The notes under the pieces are model-generated. The model saw only the letters and a program-made list of their open reading frames with translations, was not told the origin of the DNA and ran no database searches. Source: Intoshia linei (taxonomy: Eukaryota > Animalia > Orthonectida). Taken from it: a DNA stretch of 45,838 nucleotides. The first letter of the stretch is position 1; every line of letters starts with the position of its first letter. Positions 6,680 through 45,838 of this stretch are shown here, piece after piece. The stretch spans positions 1 through 45,838 of the forward strand of contig LWCA01000159.1 in NCBI GenBank assembly GCA_001642005.1, written 5' to 3'. The translations under genes were made by a program, and so were the position numbers.

Positions 6680-9600
6680 ATGTCATTATTTGGATTGGAA
6701 AATATTTGGCAAGCTGTTCCAGACGAATATACAGAATTCAAATCTGAAACCAATCAAAGTCAATATATTGTTTGGTATTCTTCTTTGACTTGGTCTGATT
6801 CGCGTAATTGTGTTTTTTATTTTCATTATTGATATTATATATTAGATGACAATATTTTGCTAGTTTGTAATGATAAAGGGTTTTTCAAAATTTATGAATT
6901 CCCGAAAAATCTTGCTACACATTATACCGAAAGCTATCCAATTGTTTCGCCGTTAGAATTTAATACTAATGAAGAAATTACAGCTGTAGAGTATTATCCG
7001 AGGTAAATTAATTCTTTTATGAAGAGAACTGTTTATAAAAGCGAGTTGAACAATTCACAATGAAACTAGATCAAGTCTCCAAATTATACGGACTGTCATA
7101 ATTAAAAACTGACTTGTATGTTGGTTTCGCGCACAAACAGTAGCAGCTACTGAGTAGCTAACTTGACAATGGTGAGTTTCTATATTTTTTTTTATATAAC
7201 TCAAATTGAAGAAAAAATTAAATTCTAACCCATACGAGATTGATGATTTTCAAAATTGAAATGATTTCAAAATTTGATAGGGTTTATTAAGATATTTTTT
7301 TAATCCATTTTTATAATATTTTGAAGATAATTTTAGGTAAAGTGACCAGAAAAATACGTACTATCACTTTTAGTTTATTTGGTATAAATTTTAAGCCGAA
7401 TTTTTTTAATTGTCATCATAGATAAGTAGTTTTGGCTTTAAATTTAGTTAAAGGTTAAAGTTAAAGGATCGTCTGCAGCACTGTTTGATGATTGGTCGGC
7501 AAAAGGATATTCATCTATATAGACTTTTAGTGCCGGTTCGGGGCTAACAATATAATCACTGCTAGTGTAAAAATCATTTATTATTAAAAAAATTTTTTCC
7601 GATTAGAAATTATAGATTTAATCAACGGTGAATTGGTTTTATACTGGAATTATCAGATGAGCTTTATCGGAATAAACAGTATTATTTTCCACATCCTTAT
7701 CATTAACAGGTGGTATGTTCTGCTATATTTTTTGAGGAACTCGTTAGGTGTGGATATAGGGATTAATTATTTAAATAAAATGGTTGTTGTAATTTGATAA
7801 CATGAAAAATTTGGAATATAATTTTGATAATGATATGTTGCAGTGGCGACTCTGGCTAACCCAGATCACTCGGGCTAAGATTTCTATGACAACCACACAT
7901 TTTTTTTAAATTATATTCGAAAATAATAAATATCAAAAAAAATTTACAAATAAGAAGTAATTATAAACTAAATGTGAAAATTATAAATAGAAAATGAAGA
8001 TTCAAATTTTTTGTAACGATATTTGAAATTGACATAACTAAGATATAAATAATTTCTCATAATTATCAGGTGTACTCCGCTATATAAATTTAATCTATAG
8101 ATTTATTTACTAGGCGAATTTAAATATGCCAGATGTATATGTATTTAAATTGATTTAAACATTTATTCAAATGATTCGCTTACAATTGATGGTCATGAAT
8201 AATCTTTTCTGAATTTAAGACTCTGAATATATAGTTGTGTTTACATTTAAAATTAGAAATTCATTTAACAATTATTAAGAAATTTAACATTCGAAAATAT
8301 TAAATGTTTAATTTTTTTTAATATTTTTCTAATTTTTCAAAAACTATCGACTCGGGCTTTGCCCGAGTATTCTGAGTTGGTGAGTCGCCACTGATATGTT
8401 GGCTTAACTATATGTTAGTTATGTCTAACTATGATTATAAGGTTGTCTATGCTTTTTCGCAGTGCGAATAGTATTTTGGCGTACTTGGTTGGAATTTAAG
8501 GTGGATTGAGGCATAATAGGTACAGATATGTTACGACCACGAACAATTTCAGACGGAGAAACAGAATTGCGTGCAGTTGGTGTATTCTGTAATTCCATTA
8601 AAATATTTGCGATAAAATAACGCCAATTACAGAAATCTTTTTAACATAAACAACGCAATTTGTATTTAACAGTTTGATTTAAACGTTCAACAAGGCCAAT
8701 ACTTTGATATTTATAAAGAATAGAATGAGTTTTGTGGATACCATATTCTATGCATAATTGTTTAACCAATTTTGATTCAAACTGAGTACCGCAATCAGTA
8801 TGGATACGTGCGGGTACGCCATATCTAGTTATAATATTTGTTTTTATGTGTTCAATAACATTTTCTGTTGATAAATTTTAGATAGGAATAATTTCCGGCC
8901 ACCTAGAAAAATGGTTAATCATTACTAATAAATATTTTTTGTAATTATTGGATTCTGGGAAGGGACCAGCGAAATCAAGTTGCCATACTTCATTGAATCG
9001 AGATGCATTTTGTTGTTTAAGTGTTAAATAATGATGAAACCGGCCTGTTTTTTGTTGACTACAAATTGTACAATTTTTAATGAATTGTTTAACAGCTGCT
9101 TCCAAGCCTGTATCTGTATCAAGTAATTTGATAACAGGTGCAGATGATAATTTTTGTTTAAGAGTTTTGAATGCATGTATACATTTGTTATCCCAAACAA
9201 AGGGAATATTTTTTCTGAGTAATCGATTTAATGGTTCTGGAATGTCTGCAAAATTTTGAATGAAACGCCGATGATAATTAGCGGCACTGAGAAACATTTA
9301 TACCCTACGTTTATCCGTGTGATATTTAATAGCTTTAATGCTTTCAATTTTTGCGGGATCGATTTTAATACCTGCAAAACTAATGACGTGTCCAAGAAAA
9401 TGTACTTTATCTAATCCAATATAACATTTTTTTGTTTCAAAGTAAGGCTTCATCATGCAATTTTGATAAAAATATAGAAAGGTGTCGTCTATGATCTGAC
9501 AAAGACTTTGAGTAAATAATCACGTCATCTATGTAAACTTGAGCAACACTCAACCCGCGTAAGACGCCATCCATTATACGTTGACAAGTTGCAAGTCAAT

Positions 9601-12600
9601 TTTTTAAGCCAAATGGCATAACATTAAATTGATATAGTTTACCGCGTGGACCAACAGAGAAGGCAGTTTTGTTCTTAGCATTTGCTGAAAGGGGTATTTG
9701 CCAAAACCCTGAACAAAGATCAAACGTTGAATAATATCAATTTCCTTTCAGAGAGTCAAAAATAATATTTTGTCTAGGAATGGATAGGTGTCTTGTTTGG
9801 TAATGGAATTAAGGTTACGATAATCAACACAAAATATGTCAGTTCCGTCTTTCTTTTTTATTAAGACAGGAGGAACGATATTGACTACTTGTGGTTTTTA
9901 TAATTCCAGCGTTTAACATTTCTTTAACTTTACGGGCCACAATTTCCCGTTTATGCATGGGTGGTGAATAACAATGACCAACCACTGTTTTAGAATCGTC
10001 TTTAATATCAATGTCGTGAATATAATTTTTACAACGACCTGGTTTATTGGAGAAAACATATTTAAATCGGCTCACTATTTCTTCAAAAGATTTACTTAAA
10101 TATGCCATGTTGATATCACTTTTACTGTTTAATTGTGGATCACAAGAGTCAAAATTATTCGGTAACTTGTCCTTAATAAAATTAATTGGGTGACTTGATA
10201 AATTATTACGTAGTCTCAGAGGATTTTGCAATATATCAATGTTATGACTGACAGAAATCTAAACTTAAGATTGGTTTTGAAACATTTGAGATAACAAAAG
10301 TTATGAATAAAAGAATTATTTAAAGATTTTATAAAGATTTTGGTTTTTAGTGTTCCTTTATTTACTATTGGATTACAGTTAACGCCTGTAAACTTCTTAT
10401 ATGATAATTGGTCAGCTTTAAACACATTAGGTAAAAAGGAGGAGACAGCCCCTGTATCGATAAAACAATTAAGATCGCGTTTAACAATAGTACTGTTTGT
10501 ATAAAATAATGAAGTCGAATAATTAGAACTATTTATGGCTTCATAACAATAATCATTTATGTGTCCATTTTTATTACACTTAGAACATGAGGGAATCATA
10601 TGCTTCAAATTACAATTAGCAGTATTGCATTTCCCATGTAAATAATTATCACAAATTTTATTAGATTGAGAGTCAACAATATTCAGACTTGTCAATTTGT
10701 TTACATTTCTTTTATTTGTATTGAATTTGTTGGAATAACGAAAGTTGTTATCTGCCAAATTGTTTGTTTGTATTTGATTTGATTTTGGAGAATTAACCTT
10801 TAACAATTTAATCGTTTTATTCAGACCATTAGTGACATTTATAATGCTGGTATAGCCTGCCCAATTATAATTTTTTCAGACAATTGAGCACAATTTCATG
10901 ACAAATCAAATCACTATCAGTATTTTTATCACCAGGATAAACTATTTTGACCAATCTTTTAACTTTAACAACAAATTTACGTATAGAAAAATCAATTTTT
11001 AAACATACAATTTCAATGGAATCACATCTTGATTGGGCTGTCAAACCCTCAATTTGTTTTACTTTGAGTAATCAGTTTTTCAACATTGATTGGTAATTCG
11101 TCTTCCAGTAAGAGATCTTGTAAGCCAATTTCAAAATTAAATATTATTAATTTAACCTGATCAGTTTGGGATGCAAGTGACGACTCACTGCATATTCTGA
11201 TTAGTTTTTCCTGTTTTAATATCTGATCGTGACAAGTGCAATGGGCTGTAATTTGCAATCGTGTTGTACTTTTATTATATCTGTTGCAAGATTTTTTAGC
11301 CAAAAAATTCTTATTTTGTTATTGCTTTATAAGGTATAATATACCTTTCATTATGAATAATCTACTTTGTAAAGCTTTATATGGACCCTACATTTTTTCT
11401 TTATTTGCCATTTGTTCTTAACTTACTAATTTCTACATCTTGCGATTGTAGTTCATTTATTTTTAATTCTTCCCTTATTTGAATTGCATTTATACATATT
11501 TTAGATAATGCGTCTGCGTCATTATGAAGTTTACCTGGTCTGTAGATTATTTTTGTTTTATATTGTGCTAATTTTAGAATCGATCGTGCCCACTTTCCTT
11601 TTGGATGCTTTATCTTTATAAAGTATTGTAGTTGTGCAATGCACATTGTGCACGGTCTGTTATTATTATAGAATGTGTACCACTGCCATCATTTCTAATT
11701 CTGATGTTGTATAACACGTTTCTGCTGGTTTTAAATTTCTGCTAAAATATGCTATTGGATGTTCTTTATTTGGTCTATTCTATGCTAATATCCCTCCAAT
11801 TGCGAGCATAGAAGCATCAGTTTTTTTGATGAATGGTTTTGAATAATCTGGCATTATCAAAACATGTGATTTTACCATACATGCTCTTAATTGATTAAAT
11901 GCATTATCTTGTAATAGTGTCCATTTATATGGTTCTACTTTTCTCAACAATTTTATTAGTGCCAATGTTATATGTTCATATCTATGAGTGAATCTTCTAT
12001 AAAAATTACAGTCCTCGACTACTTTGTAATTGTTTTATATTTAAAGGTTTTGGATAATTATGAATTATTTCCCGGTATTTTTCAACAGGTTTGATTCCGT
12101 CTTGAGTTATTTTACACCCTACGTATTGTATTTCAGTCATGCTAAATGACATTTTGTTAAATTCATTGTAAGGTCTGCCTTTTTTAGAATTTCAAATAAA
12201 TTTGTCAATCTATTCAAATGTTGCTTTTCTGTTTTACTAAATATTAAAATGTCATCCTCATATTAGAAATTGTATTCCTGTTAGTCTTGCGAATAAATTA
12301 TTCATCACTCTTTAAAATGTCGAGGGAGCGTTGCATAATCCAAATGCCATTACGTTGAATTCATTATGCCCTCGATTTGTGCTAAATACGGTTTTTTCAC
12401 CATCTTCTTTTCTTATCGGAATTTGCCAATAACCACTGTTTAAATCTATTAAAGAGAAATATTTCGCATCATGTAAAAAATCCAGAGTTTCATCCATTTT
12501 GGGAAGCGGGTAAGAATCTTTTATTTTCACGTCATTAAGTTTTCTATAATTAATACATAATCTGATGCTATTATTGGATTTCTGAATCGGAATTATTGCA

Positions 12601-32998: not shown

Positions 32999-34373
32999 AT
33001 GGATAAATTAAAATTTGAAACTGAATCTGAACGAGATGAAGCTGAAAAAGACGTAAATAAGAGTACAATTGAAGAAATATTATCAAACTCGGATAAAAAC
33101 ATTTTTGCTTTTCCTGAACTGAACACTGTCATTAACACTAAAAATCTTTTGAATACATTGAAAGATGATTTAATTTCTGAAAATGATATTGTTCGGAATA
33201 TTGAACAAAACAAAAATTTGCAGGGAGAATTGAATATGCAGGTTTTCTTTATTTATAGTACCTTAATCAGGATTGCGGTATGTCAAATTGAATAAAAAAT
33301 TTTTTCATGATAATCATATCAGTAAGAATGGTATACACTAGCGGTTCCCAACATACTTCACAGTTGGTACCCCTAAACTGAAAAATATAATTTGGTACCC
33401 CATAATAATTTAAATTTAGTGTAAGTATGACACCGTATCAATTAAAAAAAATGTTTAAAATGATAAAACTCTACTTGACCAAAAAGGGATAGGTGAAAAA
33501 TGATGATTGAACTGACGAAATAGGAACGTAAATATATTTAATATGCAACCTTAATTCGCAGAGATTATCAAATAGACACAAATATATAAGGAACTAAGTA
33601 GATTATTACAAATTAATTTTAATTTTCTATTATGTTTGGGAATTTAAAAAATATCTATAATTTATGAGTCATAGTATCAGACGAGCTGGTACCCAAAATA
33701 ATTTCTGGTACCCTTAGGGGTCCCAGAACTCCATTTGGGAATCGTTGTGGATTTCCGTTAAATTAAAAAGCTTTTACCAAACATTTTACTTGGCTTTGAC
33801 CCTTCAAAATTGATACTATCTCTGATTTCCAGTAAAAATTATTTAAAAATTTTAAAATGGTGTTTACCATAATTTATTTTTTTATATCAAAATAAAAGCT
33901 GAGATTTATAAAAATATACCATTTAAACTTTGAATAAACCGCGTTTTTCACAAGTGGATCGCTAACTGTATTTTTGGTTCAACATACTATACATCAATTA
34001 AACACTTAGGCTTCCTCAAAAATAAACAAAGAAAAATTCGATTCCGTTTACACGAGTTTACCAGACATACACACACCTAAAAAATTTCTTAAATTTAAAA
34101 ATAAAGAATATTTTGATAATCAAATAGAGGTATAATTCCTTTTTTAATTTTAAATAGTATAATACATATTTTGAATTTTAGCTCTCCATTGACTATGAAT
34201 ATCCATCCATGGAAGGTATTATCAATATGGATTATACTGATATAATTAATTCGTACAAATTCCCTTTTTCATACAATGAAAAATCAAAAATTGACCAAGA
34301 TTTACTTTTTTTATATAATAAAGAAATTGACAAAGAATATCAATTATTTGATAGCAATATGGCCGTAGATTAA
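32999..34373 (+). CDS. Two-exon acidic hypothetical protein (about 144 aa)
   Basis: Exon 1 32999-33241 (MDKLKFETESER...ELNMQ|gt) joins in phase 0 to exon 2 34182-34373 (ag|LSIDYEYPSMEG...NMAVD*). No recognised domain. Confidence 0.55.
33339..33748. mobile_element. hAT-like MITE in the orphan-gene intron (related fragment about 29687-29800)
   Basis: Termini TAGCGGTTCCCAA / TTGGGAATCGTTG; GGTACCC subterminal repeats. Confidence 0.6.
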
Positions 34374-35424
34374 AAATTTTTCAAATGTAATAATAAAATT
34401 TCCAATTTAAATTAATACATGTATCAGGAGTCGCCAAAGTGGTCCATACGGACCTCTAGGGATCCGTTAAAAATTATGAGATTATTGGGGTCCACGGCAA
34501 AAAAAGGTTAAAAAATCCTAATATACAGGACAATTCAGATTTTTTTTATATATAAATTAGTAAACACTGTTTACAGTTATTATAACATTTGGTGCCTTAA
34601 TTAAAACTTTCATTTGCCCACTTTTTTTCAACAAATAAATTGGATATAACTATTAATTACATCAATTAAAATTTAATAATAAAAATGTACATTTGTAAAA
34701 AATAAATAAAGATAAAATACAAATCATTTTTCAACAATTCGTTCTGTATTGATACCACTTTTTCCTATTTAAAATAATTAAATTATACATCTAAGACAGG
34801 GTCGTTGAGAGCCAGCAGTAGGCCCGGCCCAGATGGAAATTGTAGGTCCCTATAAAAAGCTTAATCGATCGTTCATTATTTAAAAATTAAAAATACCCGT
34901 TGGAAATCGCATAGGTTATCGAAATTTTGGTATACTTAAGAAATTTTTCAAGAATATTATTATAATCTTATTTTATTTATCATCAATTTTTGGACATCAA
35001 AGATTCCATTTTAACAACCACAATTATGCATAAATAAAACTTACGTATAAACACATTTCTGGAAAGGTTTTTAATGCGATTAAGAGTATTTCTAGAAGAG
35101 TATCGGTATTTTGTAAAGCAATTTGAATTTTCTATACAAAACAATAAAAATAAAGAATAATTTGATTGACCATTATTACAAAGAACAAAAAATGGCCTTA
35201 TAAACTAAAATTATATCAACGATTCCCTAAAACTTTGGGAAAGTAATCCATAAACCCACACGGTTTTTTTAGTTTCAAAATGTCTTTTCTTCATAATTAG
35301 ATTAAAAGTATCTCCCTAATTAAAAACACCAAGGTAACAATTTTCTGACGTAATTTGTGAAAATTTTAATTTAGTCATTCCTTAATGTAAACCCGCGGAC
35401 CAATACCAGTAATATTAAATTAAT

Positions 35425-38400
35425 TTAAAAAACGTGATAACTGTTAAAATAAGGTAAAAGTAAAAAATTACTTTGAAACCCATTTGTATTGACCCACATG
35501 AGTTTACTAATATTTCGAATCCATTCGTCTCTGACACTTTGATCTTGCATTTGAATTAAAAAGGTGTCATGAGGTCTCTTGTCTTTGCAAATTTTTCTTT
35601 TAAGGTTAATATTTTCATGGTAAACCAAATTAAATTTTTGAATAGACACATTTTCTTGATTTTCACATTGAAAATGTACACTTGAATTTAAACAATTTTT
35701 AGAGTCAATCATTTTAGATTTATACAAAGGATATACTGGTTTATTGCTTGAATAAGTTACGTCTATACAAAATTGAATATTATCTGGATTTTTCGAAAGT
35801 ATACGAATAGAAGAAATTTCTAAAAGTGAGAAAGCAAATTTAAACTTATTTACATTATTTTTATTTTTCGTAAAAATTAAAACTCGATCAAAAAGATACA
35901 TGTCCAAAACATTTGAACAAATTGGTACATAAACAAATCCTGACTTTGCTTCTACATGTAAAAGTTCATTTTTACTGTTACAAGATTTCGTATGTTTCCT
36001 GAGTATACTGGCCTTACCCTTGCAAATCAATTTTCCCTGTTTCTTTAAATTAATGGGACATTCAATCACAGAATAAGCTTCCAACAAGTCATTTCCGTGA
36101 CCAAGACATTTATTCATGCAATTTATAGCAGATTCAACAATTTCTAAAGTTGAACCAGTGACAATCTTGGTGAAAGATGTTAATATAAGAAGATACCGAG
36201 AAAGTCTTTGAACTGGCTCAAGAAGCAAGCTATTGATACCTAATGCATCATTCAATTTTCGCTGTTTTTCTTGAAATAATAAATAACCTCCATTCTGAAG
36301 AGCCTTTTCGGAACAAGGTTTATTGGCGTTGTAAATGGAATACAACATGAAGGATTCAATGTGGTTTAAAAAAATGTTACAAATTTCCGAAACTTTTAAA
36401 TTTTCACTAGTATTTTTTTGGCAATTTAAAATTTGAGGTAGGAAATAAACGTTGTGAAATTTATACAAGGCTTCAACATTAGAAAATATTTCATATTCTC
36501 GACAAGACCAGTACTGAGATCGTTCCAAAACGGGGATATAATGGTCTACAATTTTTTGTAATCTAGCAAGATAGACGTGTTCAGTTTCAATCAATTCGCA
36601 GACAATTTTTGCAATTGGGGTGGATTGGTTCATAATTGAGTTTAATCTTTGAGTCATATTTTTTGGCGCATTTTTTTTTAATTTAGCATCATGTATAGCC
36701 TCAGTGCTGTCATAACCTGATGAGCTATAAACATCTTCACATTTTTTTGTATTATCAAATTTTATACTAGAAAAATTGCAATTTTCAATATTTTTATCAA
36801 AGCAGTTTTTGACAATGTCGGTCAACATGCATTTGATTTCACCAATAAAATGATTAATATTATTAAAACTTGATTCATCAACCAATTTTTCAATTTTATT
36901 AATGAAACAATCAAAATTCTTTGAAAAAATATGAATGGAATTAAATATTAATGATATTATGTCAATTTGTCCATTTCGGTAAAAAGATAAATTACTAACC
37001 TTATTCTTGGACAATAATTGAACCTGTAACTTTTTTGAATCTATACAACGTACAATTTGCAATTTCTGGAAAATGTAATTGATAACAGCATCTCGCATTG
37101 TCATTACATTGGAATTTTTAAAAAAGACATTAAACTCTTCATAATTTTTGTCGTCGAGTTTTTTCATCCAATTGTAAAAATCGGAAATTGCTTGGATCCG
37201 TTTAATAACTTCCATATCCGCATTTTCATAATCAATATTTTCGGAAAAATGACAAATTTTTTCATACATTTTAACAAATTCAGACCATTTTAATATTGCC
37301 GTAGAGGCCATTGTTTCTAAATAAGCCAATGTATCATGGTATTGTGTCAAATCTGTAGATTCTAGATGTGATAATGAACATTTTAAATCATGGATACAAT
37401 CCAATGAAGACTCGTAAATAAATTGAACACTGGATACTTTGTTTGATATAATGTTAAACAATTTTTCGTCTACATTTTCAACATTTGATTCATATTGTGT
37501 ATCATTTTTAATATCCTTGTTCCAATGAGTTAACATTGATTTTACAATTAATTTTAAATTTTTAAATGACTTTTTATTCAATTTTTCATGTTTACATCCT
37601 TTGATACTATCGTCTCGGATTGTTTTAACTAAATTAGTACAATTTTTCAACTTTTTATTTAGCAAGCCTATTCCTCGATATGTTGTATCCATAGACCGCA
37701 GACATTGAATTAAAATGTTATCGCATTCCTAAAATTTTATTGAAAAAATGTATAAATATTTCATACTATACGAAATTTAATCCACAATTCAAGGTTATCG
37801 TCTCGTCTGTTACCAATTATTTTTGACAAATTTTCCTGGTTTATAAATTTGCTCAATTTTTCAACATTTTCGATAACATTCACTTTCTATTAAAAAATTA
37901 AATACATGAAATGTATATTGCAATATGCAAATCCCATGAACCCAAAAAATTTTTCAAATTTTTTTTGTGCAAATGATGTTCAAACACGAAATGTCTCATA
38001 AACTAGGAGGGGTTTATGTGGAACACATTGGCGACCGTGCTGAAATTTTATATGTTTTTAAACCATCAAATTACAAATTATCAATAAATTTCAAGTAATA
38101 ATCTTTACTTATATACAGGTATACCTCGATTAACGCGAAATTCGGTTATCGCGTTGTTTTTTTTGTGTCAATTCCTCAATTAACGCGGTGAAAAATGATT
38201 TTAAAAAAAATTTTTTATATTGAAATTATTATGAAACAGCTCTTTACTGAAAAAAATGCCCTCTTCAACATTTTTATCGAAAAATAAAATAGCAATGCAT
38301 AAATATAAGGTATTTTATATATTTAAAAAAATATATATATTTTTTTTAGGTCTCAAAGGATAGAATAACTGTCTTACTTGCTGGAAATGCTGATGGTGAT

Positions 38401-39212
38401 TTTAAATTGAAGCCATTAGTTATTGGTAGAGCCCAAAATCCAAGAGCATTACGAACTTGCAATAAAAATTATTTGCCTGTTATTTGGAAATCAAATAAGA
38501 AGGCACGGGTAACTCAAAGCATGTTTCAAGACAGGTTTAGCACATATTTTTACCCAGCAGTGGAAGAATACTACAAAATTAATAACTTATCAAATAAAAC
38601 ACTTCTCATATTGGATAACGCGCCTGGTCGTCCTAAATATTTGTGTGATATGTATGAGAATATCAATGTTATCTTTTTACCACCCAATACCACTTCCTTA
38701 CTTCAGCCCATGGATATGGGTATCATATCCACGTTCAAATCACATTACTTGAAAAATTTCAAGTGCTGTCGATTTAACTACTGGGGAAGATTCTATTACA
38801 CTTACAGAGTTTTGGAAAAACTATAATATTAAGGATGCTATATAAATACAATTATATTATTTAAATAAAATATATTAATTCATCGGTTCCCAGATGCAAA
38901 CCTGCGTACCACTACCATACTGCAGAAATAAAAAAATTTGATAAATAGTATTGATTCTGGTCAACTACTATAATAAAAAAACCTGAAGATCGCTATTGAA
39001 GTCATACAAATTATTGAGAAAATTATGCATTTGTTTATGATTATTTTTATTAATAATAATGTACACGGGTTGGTATTTTAAAATCTAGGAAAATAATAAA
39101 TAAACGCATAAAAAAGGATACAATTTTTTCCAATAATATTTGAATTAAAGTAAAATCAATGAATATAGACAAATCAACAATTACTGTAAATCCAAGAGAT
39201 TTCCGGACAGGC
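35425..39212 (-). CDS. RhoGEF with CRAL-TRIO-like N-terminus and DH-PH tandem (puratrophin-1/PLEKHG4-like)
   Basis: The 755-aa ORF has DH motifs (ELIETEHVYL, IFSNVEALYKFH, YNANKPCSE, LLEPVQRLSRY, HGNDLL) and a PH domain (NLKKQGKLI, YLFDRVLIF, RDEWIRNI). In-phase upstream exons: 37886-37767, 39084-38983, 39212-39122 (LGFTVIVD). True start and possible 3' exons (about 35045-35130) are unresolved. Confidence 0.88.
38116..38860 (+). mobile_element. Tigger/pogo transposon remnant (DDE_1 transposase) in RhoGEF intron
   Basis: TA^CAGGTATACCTCGATTAACGCG terminus; SKDRITVLLAGNADGDFKLKP, LLILDNAPG, FLPPNTTSLLQPMDMGII. Right TIR not found. Confidence 0.88.
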
Positions 39213-41181
39213 CTAAATACAATGTATACAAATAAAATTAGACAATTTTGTCAAAATAGAAATAAAAATTAACTACAAGTCACATTTACTCAAATCAGTG
39301 AAACGAAACAATTTAATTACATTTACCTGTCAAAATAATAAAAAAATTACAAAAAATAAATAATTATAAAAAATATTACTGCAATTAGTTATAAATGAGA
39401 TAGTATTACTTTGAATTAGAGCCCTGTAATAGGTCTATTTTTACTGGTCAGTGATCACTGCGTGTGAAGAAATATAAAATATTACCCGTTATGAGAATGT
39501 GGCGCAATATGGTAAAGAAAATTTAATATCGGTTAGTAATTTATAAAAAATTAAATTAATTTACGCGAGTGATTCATGGATGTATTCGAGGCCAGTAAGA
39601 ACTCGGTTCACATCAATTTTAAAAGATTTTAAATTCATGCAATTCGGATAAATAACTACTATGAATCTTGACAAAACATCAAGGTAGCCTATATAAAATT
39701 TTATATAAAAATTACATTTAACTGGTTAAGACGGTTCAAAAAATTAAAAAAAATATTACGAAAAATCTTAGAGAAAGTGGTTAAATTTAAATTAAAAGAA
39801 TATTACAATACATCTACAACAGTAAAGTGTTATAAGGATCAATTAACCGTCCTAACAGAGGTAAGCATGTATAAATATTAATTTTATAGTTTAAACCTGA
39901 AAAGGACATTATATGATCTCGATACAAATCTGCATCAAATTTCGGTAAATTTTGCATTTTTAAAATAATTGTACTTGGTAATGAGCAATGTAAAAATTAT
40001 CGATAATCATATGATGACAATTTGCAATTGTCAGTTAAAATCTTTTACAAAGCAAATGTAATGATTCAGCTATTAGAGACTTTTTTGTTATTTTCATGTG
40101 TATATGATGGTAATCACAATGTAATTTATATGTTTGGCGCATTTATATATTGATATAGTTACATTCTTTTTGTCATTAAAATTTTGAAAGAATCAAAAGT
40201 TTTGACTCAAAACTGAGTCGAACAAAGTAGTTTATTCGTTGATCTCATAAAACAATTCCATAGCGTTTAATATATTATCGGTATACCATGGCGGATATTT
40301 TAATAATAAATACATTGGAATGATATTGAATAAGCTGTTATACGGAGTGGAGAAGAGTTTTAATCGACACTGGTTCAGAAAATTCGTTCATGGGAAAAAA
40401 TCAGAACTTGAAAATAATTGCCAAGGAAAATTTAAGGATTGAAGGTATTATTGGTTATATTGTGGATAGTAATGAAATTACGATTTTAGAATTATTTTAT
40501 AATAACGAGATTTTTTATGAAAAATTTTTTATTTTGCCCGATTTCGAAATTTACAGTAAAAGTAAATTTGATTTAATTTTGGGGATGAATTTTTTACGCA
40601 TTCACGATTGTACTTTACAAATTAAGGAAAATATTTTAAATTTTAATAAAGAAAAATCGATCATAAATATATCTACGGATTTCATACATAATGATTTAGC
40701 TGTGATTCATAATAAAAATGACGATTTTATAATGATCCTGAGATATTGAAAGATAGACTATTAAATGAATTTAAAAAGGTGTTTTTGGTTGAAACTGGAT
40801 TTACGAATCTTATTCAACACAATATTGAGTTAATGGAAGGAGCAAAAGCAGTCCAAGGACCTTTATATAGTATACCAGGGAACAAAAGACAAGAAATCGA
40901 AAATTACCTACTGGAACTAATCGATAAAGACATTATTGAACCTGTAGAATCAGGAGACAAAAACAATTTTAGATCACCTTGTCTGTTGGTAAAAAAGAAA
41001 GACGGTAAAGATAGGTTATGTACAGACTTCAGAAGTTTAAATAAGATCACAAAAAAAGATCAATACCCTACACCAAACCCATAAGAAATTTTTGACAATC
41101 TAAAAAAAGTTAAATATAAAGTACTACCTTTTGGAGTAGTAAATGGGCCAATGACATGAGTGACAAAGATTAAGTGATAAA

Positions 41182-41518
41182 TAGGGCGGTTTTTTTAACC
41201 TATAAAATAAACAAATTATGTAACTTTATTAACCTATAAAAACTTTCTTATTACAAAAATATCAACTTCAAATTGGCAAATGTAAATTTCTATTTTGCAA
41301 TATATTTTTTTTCAGATCGACTGTTATGAAATTTTGGCATTCTAATAATAATAATACTATATCAATCTATGTCATATAAATAATATAAAATTAAAATGAC
41401 TTGTTAAATCGCAAGTGAATGTAAATAATTTTTGATATAACGATATTTATATTTTAAAAAAATGTTCTTTAAAATTACTTGTTTCACTATGTAACTTTAT
41501 TAACTTTTGGCCGCCCTA
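41182..41518. mobile_element. hAT-type MITE inserted in the RT of Gypsy C
   Basis: TIRs TAGGGCGG / CCGCCCTA; perfect TSD GTGATAAA. Confidence 0.88.
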
Positions 41519-41535
41519 GTGATAAACTATTAGAT

Positions 41536-43262
41536 CAGTGTTTCATAACCCATTTTGCGTTATCGCCCATTCTTTAGAATTTTTAAAAATATATTATTTT
41601 TATTGCCTAGTAAAAATAAAATTTTAATTTTAAAATGTAACGTTATATATATATTGTATGCACGAACAAATACATTTATTTTGTTTTGAACTGAATAGAA
41701 ACTAAATAATTGTATTATGAAAGTATTCTTAGAGAATAATATGATAATGTGATCTTTGCGCTTCATGATCGTTAACCAATCTTTTTATATCGTGTTCAAT
41801 TTTAGACAGGAATAAACAGGATTAATCCTTTTCTTCGACATTATGTGATTTACGACACTAAAACACTGTCAATAAATCTACCTTCTATGTCTTTTTCGAC
41901 ACCATTGATGTGATCAACAAATCTTTTTATATCAGTACAATTTGTTTTGTTTTTCATAGAATGCAATTTAAGAAATTGGTATAATTCCTTTTTTTGCAAT
42001 ATTATTACTAAAGATTTCTAATTTTTTAATACACTGAGATAATTTTGTTGCAGCAAATCAGTGTCAATTTATTTCCTACAAGGCACATACTTACACATAT
42101 AATTAGTGTTAGATAACTTATATTGTTAAACTCTTAATAAATTAATTATTATTAGGGCAGTTTTTTATGGCAAAATTCCATTTTTTATATGATAATCAGC
42201 ACGAAATTACAAGCATCATGATATCAATATCATGTTTATTAATTAGCTAATTAACAATTTATAAAGTCAATAAATGCCATAAAGTAAGTTTTTTTTTAAA
42301 TGCCATAAAGTCAATATTTTTTTTAAAGGATATTCGACTTAAAATAATATTTATAATATAATGAACAATAAAATTGAACAAATACCACTTTATCTATACA
42401 ATTTATTAAGAGAAGCGACATCTACAACAAATAGTGTTGAACAGAGTTTCAGTTTGTTAAAAAAATTGCTAAGTAAACAGGCAATTTTTACTTCTTAATG
42501 TTAAGAAGTTGTGTTATGTAAATGTTAATAATATTGTTATACTACAACAGGGGCCGTCATAGGGGGTCAATTTTGATTCTTTGGGGGTCGATTTGATTAA
42601 ATTTTATTAAAAAATATAAAAATAAATTTAAATTTTAAATGTAATTTGAACTTCAATGAAATATAAAATATTATATTATGTTTAAAATCTATTTGTTGGC
42701 GAACTATTGCATCTCAACCAATTAAAAAAGCTCATAAAATTTAAATAATAATGTTAATAAGAATGAATTTAGATTAGAAAAAAATTTTAGGGGTCGATTC
42801 AATACCAAAATTTTTTTGGGGTCGATTGATTAAAAGTCGTGACGTCCCCTGTACTACAATAAAGATTAATAATTTTCAACGTCTCTAATGATACAATGAG
42901 ATTAAAATCGTTTTTTTGATTCGGGGACTATGATAATATTGACATTAAGATGTTTTAAATATTGTATTGATTTAATGTAAGGCCTACGAGAGGAAGGTTT
43001 GGGGTACGATTCAGTTGGTATTACCCATAAAAACAACAAAAATTTTAAGGTCAGATAAAGTCAGTTATTTCATTTTTAGGTCAGTTTTTTTGTTATTCTA
43101 TAGGTCAATAAAAATTGGCCTAATTATCATTTAATAAATTCAATTTTTTTTATTTGATAAAATTCAATTTAATTTGTTGAAAAAAATTAAAAATATATAT
43201 TTTTTTATATATTTTCGCAACACCCAGTTAAAAAGTCAAATTGCCCAGTTTGGGAAACACTG
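41536..43262. mobile_element. hAT (Charlie-like) element inserted in the RT of Gypsy C
   Basis: TIRs CAGTGTTTCATAAC / GTTTGGGAAACACTG; flanks tattagat / gtttagat; internal remnant TNSVEQSFSLLKKL (about 42425-42470). Confidence 0.75.
42548..42851. mobile_element. hAT-type MITE nested in the 41536-43262 element
   Basis: TIRs CAGGGGCCGTCA / TGACGTCCCCTG; perfect TSD TACTACAA; GGGGTCGAT subterminal repeats. Confidence 0.88.
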
Positions 43263-45416
43263 GTTTAGATTATGCTACGGCATACTTGGATGATATAATA
43301 TATTCAGAAAATATTAATGAACATTACGAACACGTTCGTACTGTTTTAAATAGAATAAAAAAGTCAGGACTAACAGTAAATAAAAATAAATGTAAATTAA
43401 TGCCAGATAAATTAAATTTTATTGGACATACAGTTTCGAAAGACGGGATACGTCCTGATAATGATAAAGTAGAATCAATACAAAAAATGGAATGTCCTAA
43501 GAAAATCAAATCTTATTGGACATGTCAATTTACGCTGGAAACAGATATTTCGGTATTGGAGCAATGTTGCTACAAGATGGTAAACCAATCAGATTTGCAA
43601 GCAAAACTTTGGATGCAACACAGAAATTATAGTACTACGCATAAAAAAATTTTGGCGGTCTATTGGAGTAATTTTATAGATATTTATACGGTAAAAAATT
43701 TCTTGTGATTACAGACCATAAACCGTTAAAGGGAATATTAGAATCAAAGAAACACGTGGGTCGTATATTAAGGTGGATTCAAAAATTAGAACAATATGAT
43801 TACGAAATTAGTTATGGATTAGGAATTTTGAATAAAGGTGCTGACGTTTTATCTGGATTGCTTGCGCTGTGGTGTTATGGTAATGACAACTTGGGGATAA
43901 TGAAATTCCAAAAGGAAGATCAAGATTGTATAGAAATAAAACGCTATTTAAATGATAATAGTAGCCATATCCCCAGCAGTAATAAATATTTAAAGATTTT
44001 AAAATACATTAAATTGGTAGACAAAAAAATTGTTAACATTGAAAATAATAAATTGTTAGTACCTAAGGTAAACATAATGAATTAATAAAAAAAATTCATG
44101 AAGGTATAGGAGTAAATCATATGGCAATAAAGAAAACGTATCGAATAATGAGAAGAGCTTATTTTTGGCCAGGAATGTATTTAGACGTAAAGAAATTTAT
44201 AAACGAATGTGATCGTTGTTGTAAATCAAAAAAAGGTAGACCTAAACATATTGCATCGTTAAAACAAATGATTAAATCAAAAGTAAACGAGTTATGGCAA
44301 ATCGATCATGAAGGCTTATTCCCAATGTCCTCAAGAGGAAACCAATATTTATTAGTTTGTGTAGATAATTATTTAAAATGGGTAGAGGCTATTTCCAGTA
44401 TCGTCAACATTTGCATTAGAAACAGCTGAAGCTATATTTAATAATATCATCTGCAGATTCGTAGTTTCGAAAACAAATTCATTTCGATAAAGGTGCAGCT
44501 TTTGAGTCTCATTTAATGAAAAACTTATGTAAGATGTGTAGAATTATTAAAACATCCACATAAGCATATCACCACGAGGGTGTCGGTCTGGCAGAAAGAA
44601 CTAATAGAACAATAAAGGATTTATTAAGAGTTAAATAAAACTGGGATAATAATTTATGGGAAGATCAAATATCTGGTATTTTGTTAGCCTTACATAACTG
44701 TTATACAGAAGGAACAAATGTATTCCCGGCTAGTATAGTATACGGACACGAATTGGAAATCCCTAATCTCGACGAATATGATACGTCATTATATTGGTTA
44801 AGGGATAGAGAAAATGAAGTAATTAATGCTGAAAAACTAATTAATTATTTTACAAAATAGAACCGAAGGGTAAAAAAAAATTTTGATAAAACGGTACCAA
44901 ACGGGATGACTTATTGGAAAAATAATTATAGAATTAACGATAAGAAAGTAAAAAAATTGGACGACCCGTATGTCCCTAGGAATATTAATTGGATAGATGA
45001 GGAAAAAGACAATAATCCATGTTACGATAGGAAACAAAAAAATAATATCACACTTCTAAAATATTGTATATGTAAAATGTCGGAAAACGATACAGATTTC
45101 ATGATCGAATGCTCAGAATGTTTAAACTGGTTCCACGGAAAATGTATAAAAATAAAAAAGAGACATCTAGTCAATAAAAATTATTATTGTCCAGAGTATA
45201 AAATAAAAAAAGAAAAAAATAATTATGTGGATACGTATATTTTGGATAATCTTAATACGAGTGAAATGGCGTTAGCTGAAATAACTGATAATTCTAGAGA
45301 ATTATTAGGGAATCGAGAATCAGAAATAAGAGAAATTAGGATAAGAAAAAAATCTAAAAGATATGACGATTACATATTTTATTAAGTATAAATAAACTCA
45401 ATAAAGATGAGTGGAT

Positions 45417-45727
45417 TCTGGAATTTATGCTATTTGTGACAATTTTCAGGATGGGACTGTTTTTACTTTATTTTTAATATTATAGACACATTCTGTCTAA
45501 TAAATTATTTTAATGGGATGACAATTGTTTTTAAAATTCTTTACGCAAATGTTAACAAACAAAAAATTAAGAAGGAATAATTAATTTTAAAGTAAAAAGT
45601 AATGTGATATGATGGGTTCCACCTGAAACAAATTTGGAACCACTTTTTTAAAGGATTAATAATAGTGAATAGTAGGATTTTTAAGTTAGATTTTCAACAT
45701 GAATTTATTATTTTAATATAATAAAAA
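45417..45727 (+). repeat. Helitron internal fragment abutting the 3' end of Gypsy C
   Basis: Matches about 5071-5350. Confidence 0.7.
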
Positions 45728-45838
45728 GGCAGTCGATTTATTAGCCATCAAATAATAACATATGAAGTCAAATTAATTTTATTTAACTTCAAATTATATA
45801 TAATCAAATTAAATAATTTTGAATTTAAAATATTAAAT

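Follow-up and report, generated by a model that had tools for sequence, protein, structure and literature searches.

What does the 159-aa open reading frame (ORF) at the 3' end of this DNA encode, to what does it belong, and what might its product have done? The window, meaning the whole analysed stretch of 45,838 nt, comes from Intoshia linei (Orthonectida), a parasitic worm with an assembly of 41.6 Mb, and has a G+C content of 26–27%. The initial annotation read the ORF as the last pol segment of a Gypsy retrotransposon carrying a PHD finger where chromoviruses carry a chromodomain, and proposed that the finger may have guided integration to active promoters. The ORF contains the following features:

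44906-45385, plus strand: last pol ORF, 159 aa, with a GPY/F-like DPYVP, a PHD finger, the tail KRYDDY and a stop
44963-44977, plus strand: GPY/F-like DPYVP
45062-45199, plus strand: PHD finger, with Tyr at the position of the eighth Zn ligand
45062-45076, plus strand: YCICK, motif in the PHD of the window copy
45128-45145, plus strand: WFHGKC, motif in the PHD of the window copy
45182-45199, plus strand: YYCPEY, end of the PHD of the window copy
45356-45373, plus strand: tail motif KRYDDY, with the stop TAA at 45383-45385

The annotated PHD was borne out. In Pfam, PF00628 (PHD) matched residues 54–97 of the ORF (E 1.6e-8; 34.9 bits, with the cut-off at 24) and PHD_5 likewise exceeded its own cut-off; PHD families were the only ones matched in this terminal ORF, and PF00385 (Chromo) gave no match. 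Searched against PDB sequences with phmmer, the 159-aa ORF matched KDM7A (E 5.7e-12), PHF2 and PHF8 (both ~4e-11) and also BPTF, far better than chance would give. Of the Cys4-His-Cys3 Zn ligands the first seven are in place and the eighth has been lost, as first noted, its position being occupied by Tyr. The finger had been placed directly after the integrase core, which is slightly loose: DPYVP intervenes, and the PHD begins 28 codons past it. Its position after a GPY/F-like module is, as claimed, the one equivalent to that of the chromodomain.

Upstream of the ORF, Pfam and tblastn delimited an element spanning 40298-45398 on the plus strand, in the order PR-RT-RH-IN-PHD. Its parts and neighbours are:

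36106-36606, minus strand: RhoGEF domain
40298-41124, plus strand: 5' piece of the element, with a 94% identical copy at C3043:5857-6684, to which tblastn likewise assigns RTn and PR
40390-40749, plus strand: protease-like ORF, with weak Pfam aspartyl-protease matches
40746-41084, plus strand: RT N-terminal ORF (tblastn)
41169-43139, no strand assigned: dispersed repeats unrelated to the element, splitting RT (own-genome DNA search)
43241-44085, plus strand: RT C-terminal part with the YLDD region, then RNase H and the N-terminus of integrase, in two ORFs of different frames
44121-44429, plus strand: zinc finger (H2C2) of integrase with the first part of the catalytic core (Integrase_H2C2 E 1.2e-11, weak rve)
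44295-44315, plus strand: motif with the first catalytic Asp, WQIDHEG
44430-44860, plus strand: remainder of the core plus integrase C-terminal region, broken (three-frame translation; tblastn core match at 44471-44761)
44483-44503, plus strand: motif with the second catalytic Asp
44591-44608, plus strand: motif with the catalytic Glu
44681-44860, plus strand: integrase C-terminal ORF, in the same frame as the PHD ORF
45386-45415, plus strand: first part of a post-stop segment, which resumes at 45728 and runs to ~45760 once an inserted repeat is subtracted (~60–70 nt in total)
45416-45727, no strand assigned: 312-bp high-copy repeat, not Gypsy, with at least 15 copies of ~90–92% identity on other contigs

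The assignment to Gypsy held, with the order PR-RT-RH-IN and Pfam matches to RVT_1, RT_RNaseH (PF17917/PF17919), Integrase_H2C2 (PF17921) and rve. Within the RT/RNase H stretch, whose ORFs lie at 43241-43708 and 43705-44085, RVT_1 was matched at E 4.8e-11 and RT_RNaseH at E 6.8e-5. Database relatives of the RH-IN region were Gypsy pol proteins labelled K02A2.6-like, some of them with Chromo. The window copy is a dead, 5'-truncated and repeat-interrupted Ty3/Gypsy-type retrotransposon: its RT is split by ~2 kb of repeats, its integrase is frameshifted twice (~44410 and ~44470), and four in-frame stops lie between integrase core and PHD (44462 TAG, 44561 TAA, 44636 TAA and 44858 TAG). Stops aside, a single frame (coordinate mod 3 = 2) runs from the second catalytic Asp (~44470) through the PHD. 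The repeat units that split RT (e.g. 42141-42519) have dozens of genomic matches of 85–92%, confined to these sub-stretches. No gag-like ORF was recognised upstream of 40298, where family homology begins just before PR, an absence that in a 5'-truncated copy tells nothing of the family as a whole; no direct repeat of at least 40 nt was found within 34000-45838; the contig stops at 45838. A tRNA gene search found none, and inverted repeats amounted to AT-rich noise. The element had been described as lying just upstream of RhoGEF exons. The neighbour is there, its domain separated from position 40298, where the element begins on that side, by at least ~3.7 kb and with a pogo-like fragment between the two; as a single case it was given no weight.

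Whether the PHD belongs to the element was addressed with genomic copies. A sister copy, which with the window copy makes up family A, lies at C2865:24145-26318 (minus strand) and is 89% identical to window 43338-45398. It retains a stop-free frame of 222 aa leading from the region of the integrase catalytic Glu through the GPY/F-like motif into the PHD, and the suggested check for integrase and PHD in one ORF was thus positive, though the eighth ligand is Ser in this copy. At least three further families, at ~14 loci, carry integrase-PHD and share 30–50% amino acid identity with family A:

Family B: C2323, C2597 and C2412, with integrase-PHD-tail layout
Family C: C3159, C3187, C2348, C1808, C947 and others, with integrase-PHD-tail layout; C708 and C368 are PHD-only fragments
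Family D: C2233, a single copy, with linker and PHD followed by the contig end

Families B, C and D have Cys as the eighth ligand, and fingers with all eight ligands, the other item to be checked, were found in each of them (C2323 in B, C3159 and C3187 in C, C2233 in D). Apart from the eighth ligand, lost in both family A copies, no family departs from the others in its Zn ligands or in the motifs DFM and WFHG. Where B and C copies have kept their 3' ends, the integrase core is followed by a K-L-D linker, the PHD and a basic tail, P-x-K-F-x-D-Y. Flanks of the PHD-bearing copies are unrelated to each other, so the copies are separate insertions. Because the finger is in frame with integrase in C2865 and recurs, complete with its eight ligands, in no fewer than three related families, it is an element-encoded domain of pol.

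Three other origins were weighed against these copies. One takes the ORF for part of a host gene, or of a domesticated one, and GenBank does annotate a gene model on this contig, OAF70340.1, in which 258 aa join the integrase zinc finger, a piece from the C-terminus of integrase and the PHD ORF; that model, however, is made of retroelement pieces only, spliced around stops and frameshifts. The C2865 copy is moreover broken at places other than the window copy, differs from it neutrally and has also lost the eighth ligand; RT and PR lie collinear upstream, and no ortholog outside Intoshia was found among the best 150 profile matches or in word-indexed searches. The layout recurs in families B, C and D, contrary to what absence of the PHD from other copies, or a spliced host gene, would give. 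We regard a host exon as very improbable.

Chance uptake of a host PHD exon by one copy, with no transposing lineage ever having had the domain, could appeal to the nearest host PHD, that of the PHF8/KDM7-like gene (PHD plus JmjC) on C3131, at 45% identity. Four families diverged to 30–50% amino acid identity nevertheless share PHD, linker and tail at the same position of pol, and the unrelated flanks show that the loci are not segmental duplicates of a single one; such an accident is hardly credible.

The third alternative, Ginger1-like cut-and-paste DNA transposons, has a precedent in Ginger1-9_HM of Hydra, in which Ulp1 and a PHD follow an integrase-like transposase (H2C2, DDE, GPY/F), and several Intoshia loci do show integrase and PHD alone. 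Against it, six loci (the window, C2865, C2412, C2597, C2233 and C947) have RT, RNase H or both immediately upstream and in the same orientation, and no Ulp1, OTU or terminal inverted repeats were seen. We give this reading next to no credence and retain the Gypsy retrotransposon.

The ends of the element were compared among copies. The 60–70-nt post-stop segment of the window aligns to DNA that flanks the C2865 copy immediately 5' of its truncated end, where the 312-bp repeat is missing from the homologous segment; downstream of the C2865 copy, homology stops ~13 nt past the stop codon. In family C a 41-nt segment acts like the post-stop segment of family A. The post-stop segment might represent what is left of a terminal repeat. 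An 86-nt candidate terminal segment gave few, short genomic matches, and comparison of family C 3' ends yielded a common 3' region of ~500 nt and no clear LTR pair. Among the PHD-element copies found genome-wide there was no LTR pair, gag or primer-binding site, and no intact copy.

Gypsy fragments without a PHD occur in the same genome. In some of these, for example C1518 and C2524, the tail motif, of the general form P-x-K-(F/Y)-x-D-(Y/F), directly follows the GPY/F-like module, which gives the PHD the look of a domain inserted between module and tail. A further PHD-less fragment, at window 8452-9873 (minus strand), has decayed too far for a tail to be visible. For the integrase tree, tblastn pieces were projected on one query with stops as X, and X and gaps were stripped before realignment. 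All 15 Intoshia rows formed one starred clade (97/98), separate from the 15 external Gypsy proteins; within these 30 rows the PHD-bearing families were not recovered as one group. A single origin of those families may be entertained.

Selection and age were judged from coding changes and base composition. The two family A copies differ with a dN/dS of 0.87, i.e. neutrally, and the changes within their PHD are 7 non-synonymous and 0 synonymous. For the three family B copies dN/dS was 0.40–0.50, and 0.2–0.33 for the PHD alone, from small counts; these values suggest that part of the family B divergence arose while the family was active. G+C is 41–42% in family B (within flanks of 26%), 33.5% in family C and 29% in family A. 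Family A looks the oldest of the families.

To which class of PHD does the finger belong? The intact finger of family B was used for this comparison. Its best PDB sequence match was 2RI7 (BPTF PHD Y17E with H3K4me2), followed by wild-type BPTF, PHF2, KDM7A and PHF8; identity to BPTF/KDM7-family PHDs was ~33–42% over ~50 residues, with equal loop lengths. An AlphaFold2 model of moderate quality (mean pLDDT 69, core ~85) was submitted to Foldseek and returned the same ranking as the PDB sequence search: the strongest matches (E <0.001) were H3K4me2/3 readers, and Pygo came 40th. We infer that the PHD belongs to the BPTF/KDM7 (PHF2, PHF8, KDM7A) class of H3K4me readers. A weak alignment of the pre-PHD and PHD to the KDM7 JmjC region (i-E 1.9–26) was taken as chance.

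The methyl-lysine pocket was read from the alignment. The BPTF cage Tyr10/Tyr17/Tyr23/Trp32 corresponds to Tyr(Phe)/Glu/Met/Trp in families A–C. Three of the four cage positions (10, 23 and 32) fit PHF2/PHF8 (Tyr/Tyr/Met/Trp), and position 17 differs in being Glu; the host gene on C3131 reads Tyr/Tyr/Met/Trp. Of the original description, the H3K4me-reader type is favoured by the PDB sequence and fold matches; the full aromatic cage was not borne out, the pocket being Tyr/Glu/Met/Trp. BPTF Y17E prefers Kme2 over Kme3 (PMC4589357). The finger is accordingly best described as a predicted reader of methylated H3K4, perhaps favouring me2; me2 would be at least as likely a ligand as me3 because of the Glu at the position of BPTF Tyr17.

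What such a domain did for the element can be proposed by analogy. The usual account of where retroelements integrate invokes a tether between integrase and chromatin: LEDGF serves HIV, BET proteins serve MLV, and chromoviruses use their chromodomains. The C-terminus of the once-active parent Gypsy pol ran from integrase core through GPY/F-like module, element-encoded PHD and short basic tail to the stop, and we consider it probable that the role of the finger was to tether integrase to H3K4me2/3 chromatin. The PHD would have bound H3K4me2/3 nucleosomes, i.e. active promoter-proximal chromatin, and would have held the integrase-cDNA complex at marked nucleosomes, biasing integration. The tether role, and with it the presumed targeting of integration to H3K4me2/3 chromatin, is taken from the chromodomains of chromoviruses, for which directed integration was reportedly described by Gao et al. 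2008. In the window copy any function is gone, and all PHD copies found are truncated or broken; ~14 old loci in a compact genome are a sample unable to reveal a bias towards TSS.

An element-encoded PHD might instead not have steered integration and have acted after it or during expression, by keeping copies near active chromatin, opposing silencing, retaining the pre-integration complex or binding a non-histone partner. Transposon PHDs with no obvious integrase tether are indeed found, in various places, in CR1, Penelope-like Chlamys, Ginger1 and Chlamydomonas Gypsy-7a (RH-PHD-INT); the PHF2 PHD takes a non-histone peptide, that of VRK1 (PDB 7M10, 8F8Y); and Grau-Bove et al. suggest that captured readers may aid escape from host suppression. 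Against this stand the place of the PHD in the integrase C-terminal region after the GPY/F-like module, where chromoviral chromodomains tether, and the conservation of pocket residues in all families. We hold a non-steering role to be unlikely, while leaving it an appreciable chance, and continue with the tether.

A more specific version of the tether is offered tentatively, as possible and somewhat doubtful: an orthonectid radiation of Gypsy elements, some of which would have inserted, between the integrase GPY/F module and the conserved P-x-K-F-x-D-Y tail, a Glu-pocket PHD of KDM7/BPTF type that directed integration to promoter-proximal H3K4me2/3 chromatin. If true, this would mirror, in euchromatin, the way chromoviruses target heterochromatin, and the specificity switch engineered in BPTF Y17E would have a parallel in nature.

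Relatives outside Intoshia were sought. Among the best 150 matches inspected from a profile search against 1.84 billion representatives, those covering the full profile came from Intoshia only; the other matches checked were cellular PHD proteins (KDM5, BPTF/BAZ, SWIB-PHD) and one PIF1-helicase-PHD protein. Word-indexed searches, which are insensitive, returned Gypsy pol without a PHD or Intoshia proteins only. A metagenome scan gave four PHD-only contigs, with no RT or integrase on them. In the ESM Atlas, an 80-member H2C2-rve-PHD cluster, mostly from Mollusca, came up with a score of 0.81 and TM of 0.28–0.45, a weak similarity that serves as a lead only.

Novelty of a PHD in retrotransposons as such had been overstated, a Chlamydomonas Gypsy pol and cnidarian retrotransposon-PHD fusions having already been published. 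For a Gypsy lineage with an apparent BPTF/KDM7-type PHD after the integrase GPY/F module, no description was found. An H3K4me-type PHD at the chromodomain position would be a natural test of tether modularity, and would provide a natural PHD with Glu at a cage position for which an engineered mutant of BPTF is the only known example. The comparison also brought to light chimeric Intoshia GenBank gene models that contain retroelement pieces (e.g. OAF70340.1). Practical value is limited: the copies found are all dead, the host is not experimentally tractable and transposon PHDs are a known theme.

Among known systems, PHD and Chromo are, according to Grau-Bove et al. (bioRxiv 10.1101/2021.11.30.470311), the readers most often joined to RT/integrase domains, and further published transposon PHDs occur in CR1 elements, Penelope-like Chlamys elements and Rehavkus. 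Ginger1-9_HM (PMC2836005) likewise combines a Gypsy-like integrase with a C-terminal PHD; Ginger1, however, moves by cut and paste, is bounded by TIRs, lacks RT and has Ulp1 beside the PHD, whereas the Intoshia elements have RT and RH collinear upstream. The Chlamydomonas element Gypsy-7a_cRei (PMC9940879, PMC8557442) is likewise a Gypsy LTR element whose polyprotein contains a PHD. According to the figure legend, that green-algal element has its PHD between RH and INT (PROT-RT-RH-PHD-INT), whereas in the spiralian Intoshia it follows integrase. No sequence relationship between the Chlamydomonas PHD Gypsy and the Intoshia element was found. Another C. reinhardtii TE, REM1, is also said to have a PHD, reportedly from work of Perez-Alegre in 2005.

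The cnidarian fusions of the same preprint (Grau-Bove et al., bioRxiv 10.1101/2021.11.30.470311) likewise join an animal retrotransposon to an H3K4me-reading PHD; theirs is orthologous to PYGO1/2, whereas the Intoshia finger is closest to those of the BPTF/KDM7 family. Its best structural counterparts, BPTF Y17E (2RI7), PHF2 (3KQI), PHF8 (3KV4) and KDM7A (3KV5), include one that shares Glu17 with it, BPTF Y17E; BPTF and KDM7 PHDs belong to cellular chromatin proteins, whereas the Intoshia finger is a transposon's and a predicted reader. CopiaMBD of arthropods (PMC6673714) is likewise a retrotransposon lineage confined to one animal group, whose captured reader of a chromatin or DNA mark probably derives from the host's own genes. 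It belongs to Copia and carries a methyl-CpG-binding domain whose binding was demonstrated experimentally, whereas the Intoshia element is a Gypsy with a PHD whose reader role is predicted. Chromoviruses (e.g. MAGGY, Tf1) likewise place a histone-mark reader after the GPY/F module of a Gypsy pol and would have the presumed tether logic in common with the Intoshia element. Their chromodomain reads H3K9me heterochromatin, whereas the Intoshia element, which has no Chromo match, carries in its place a PHD of the class that reads H3K4me, a mark of active chromatin.

Besides the Gypsy copy that carries a PHD finger, host and mobile-element sequences were assigned in the window as follows (window positions; strand where assigned).

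8452-9873 (-): second Gypsy fragment, comprising RT, integrase finger, integrase core and integrase C-terminus
36106-36606 (-): RhoGEF (PF00621) domain, 92 bits, within a 767-aa open frame
38407-38826: 139-aa ORF, DDE_1 (pogo/Tigger-type transposase), strong match (E 3.4e-29)
41169-43139: cluster of further dispersed repeats, interrupting the RT of the Gypsy copy
45416-45727: 312-bp dispersed repeat, inserted directly past the end of the Gypsy element

The RhoGEF gene named in the initial annotation is the host gene containing the domain at 36106-36606, and the DDE_1 ORF sits between this gene and the Gypsy copy. The second Gypsy fragment is an unrelated one that belongs to a PHD-less family and, in the integrase tree, clusters with copies on contigs C2524 and C541. 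Within the RT-splitting cluster, the unit at 42141-42519 was found in more than 20 genomic copies (86-92% identity), and the stretch at 41169-41508 matched at least three further loci. The 312-bp repeat was recovered by DNA search of the same genome in at least 15 copies on other contigs, at about 90-92% identity; neither TIRs nor a tRNA-like head could be discerned in it.

With the 312-bp repeat excised, a 60-70-nt segment (45386-45415 + 45728-45760) directly follows the pol stop of the window copy, and this segment recurs just upstream of its 5'-truncated family A sister on C2865 (locus L019:2355-2440). A 41-nt segment behaves in like manner in family C, which shares the integrase-PHD-tail layout, when the C3187 copy is compared with those on C3159 and C947. 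Both segments may be what is left of short terminal repeats.

PHD-less Intoshia Gypsy relatives at two loci also terminate in the tail, P-x-K-(F/Y)-x-D-(F/Y), placed directly past their GPY/F-like module.

L031:5623-6300 (C1518): PHD-less Gypsy relative with tail motif
L036:6223-6900 (C2524): PHD-less Gypsy relative with tail motif

The tail is either older than the PHD finger or outlasts its loss.

Family B, of the integrase-PHD-tail layout, was represented by three copies.

L025:5576-7377 (C2412): family B copy
L017:3757-4576 (C2323): family B copy
L018:8971-9779 (C2597): family B copy

The G+C content of these copies was 41-42%, versus 26% in their flanks, with a dN/dS of 0.4-0.5; the family may have entered the genome late or through horizontal transfer. 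The C2597 copy (L018:8140-9779) is internally deleted, its RT leading straight into the integrase core a short way ahead of the catalytic Glu, and the C2323 copy starts no more than 8 bp from the point corresponding to this junction.

GenBank gene models on C2865 (P0001 = OAF71573.1) and C3159 (P0101 = OAF64908.1) mix host and retroelement pieces. One, of 2018 aa, fuses SH3, VWA, collagen and ASC sodium channel domains to RNase H, integrase and PHD; another runs in the order rve, PHD, RVT_1.

The host PHD nearest to the transposon fingers (45% identity) lies in a PHF8/KDM7-like gene.

L005:1471-2508 (C3131:11023-...): host PHF8/KDM7-like gene, PHD then JmjC in a single 346-aa open frame

At the second cage position of the methyl-lysine pocket, the transposon fingers of families A-C carry Glu and this host PHD has Tyr.
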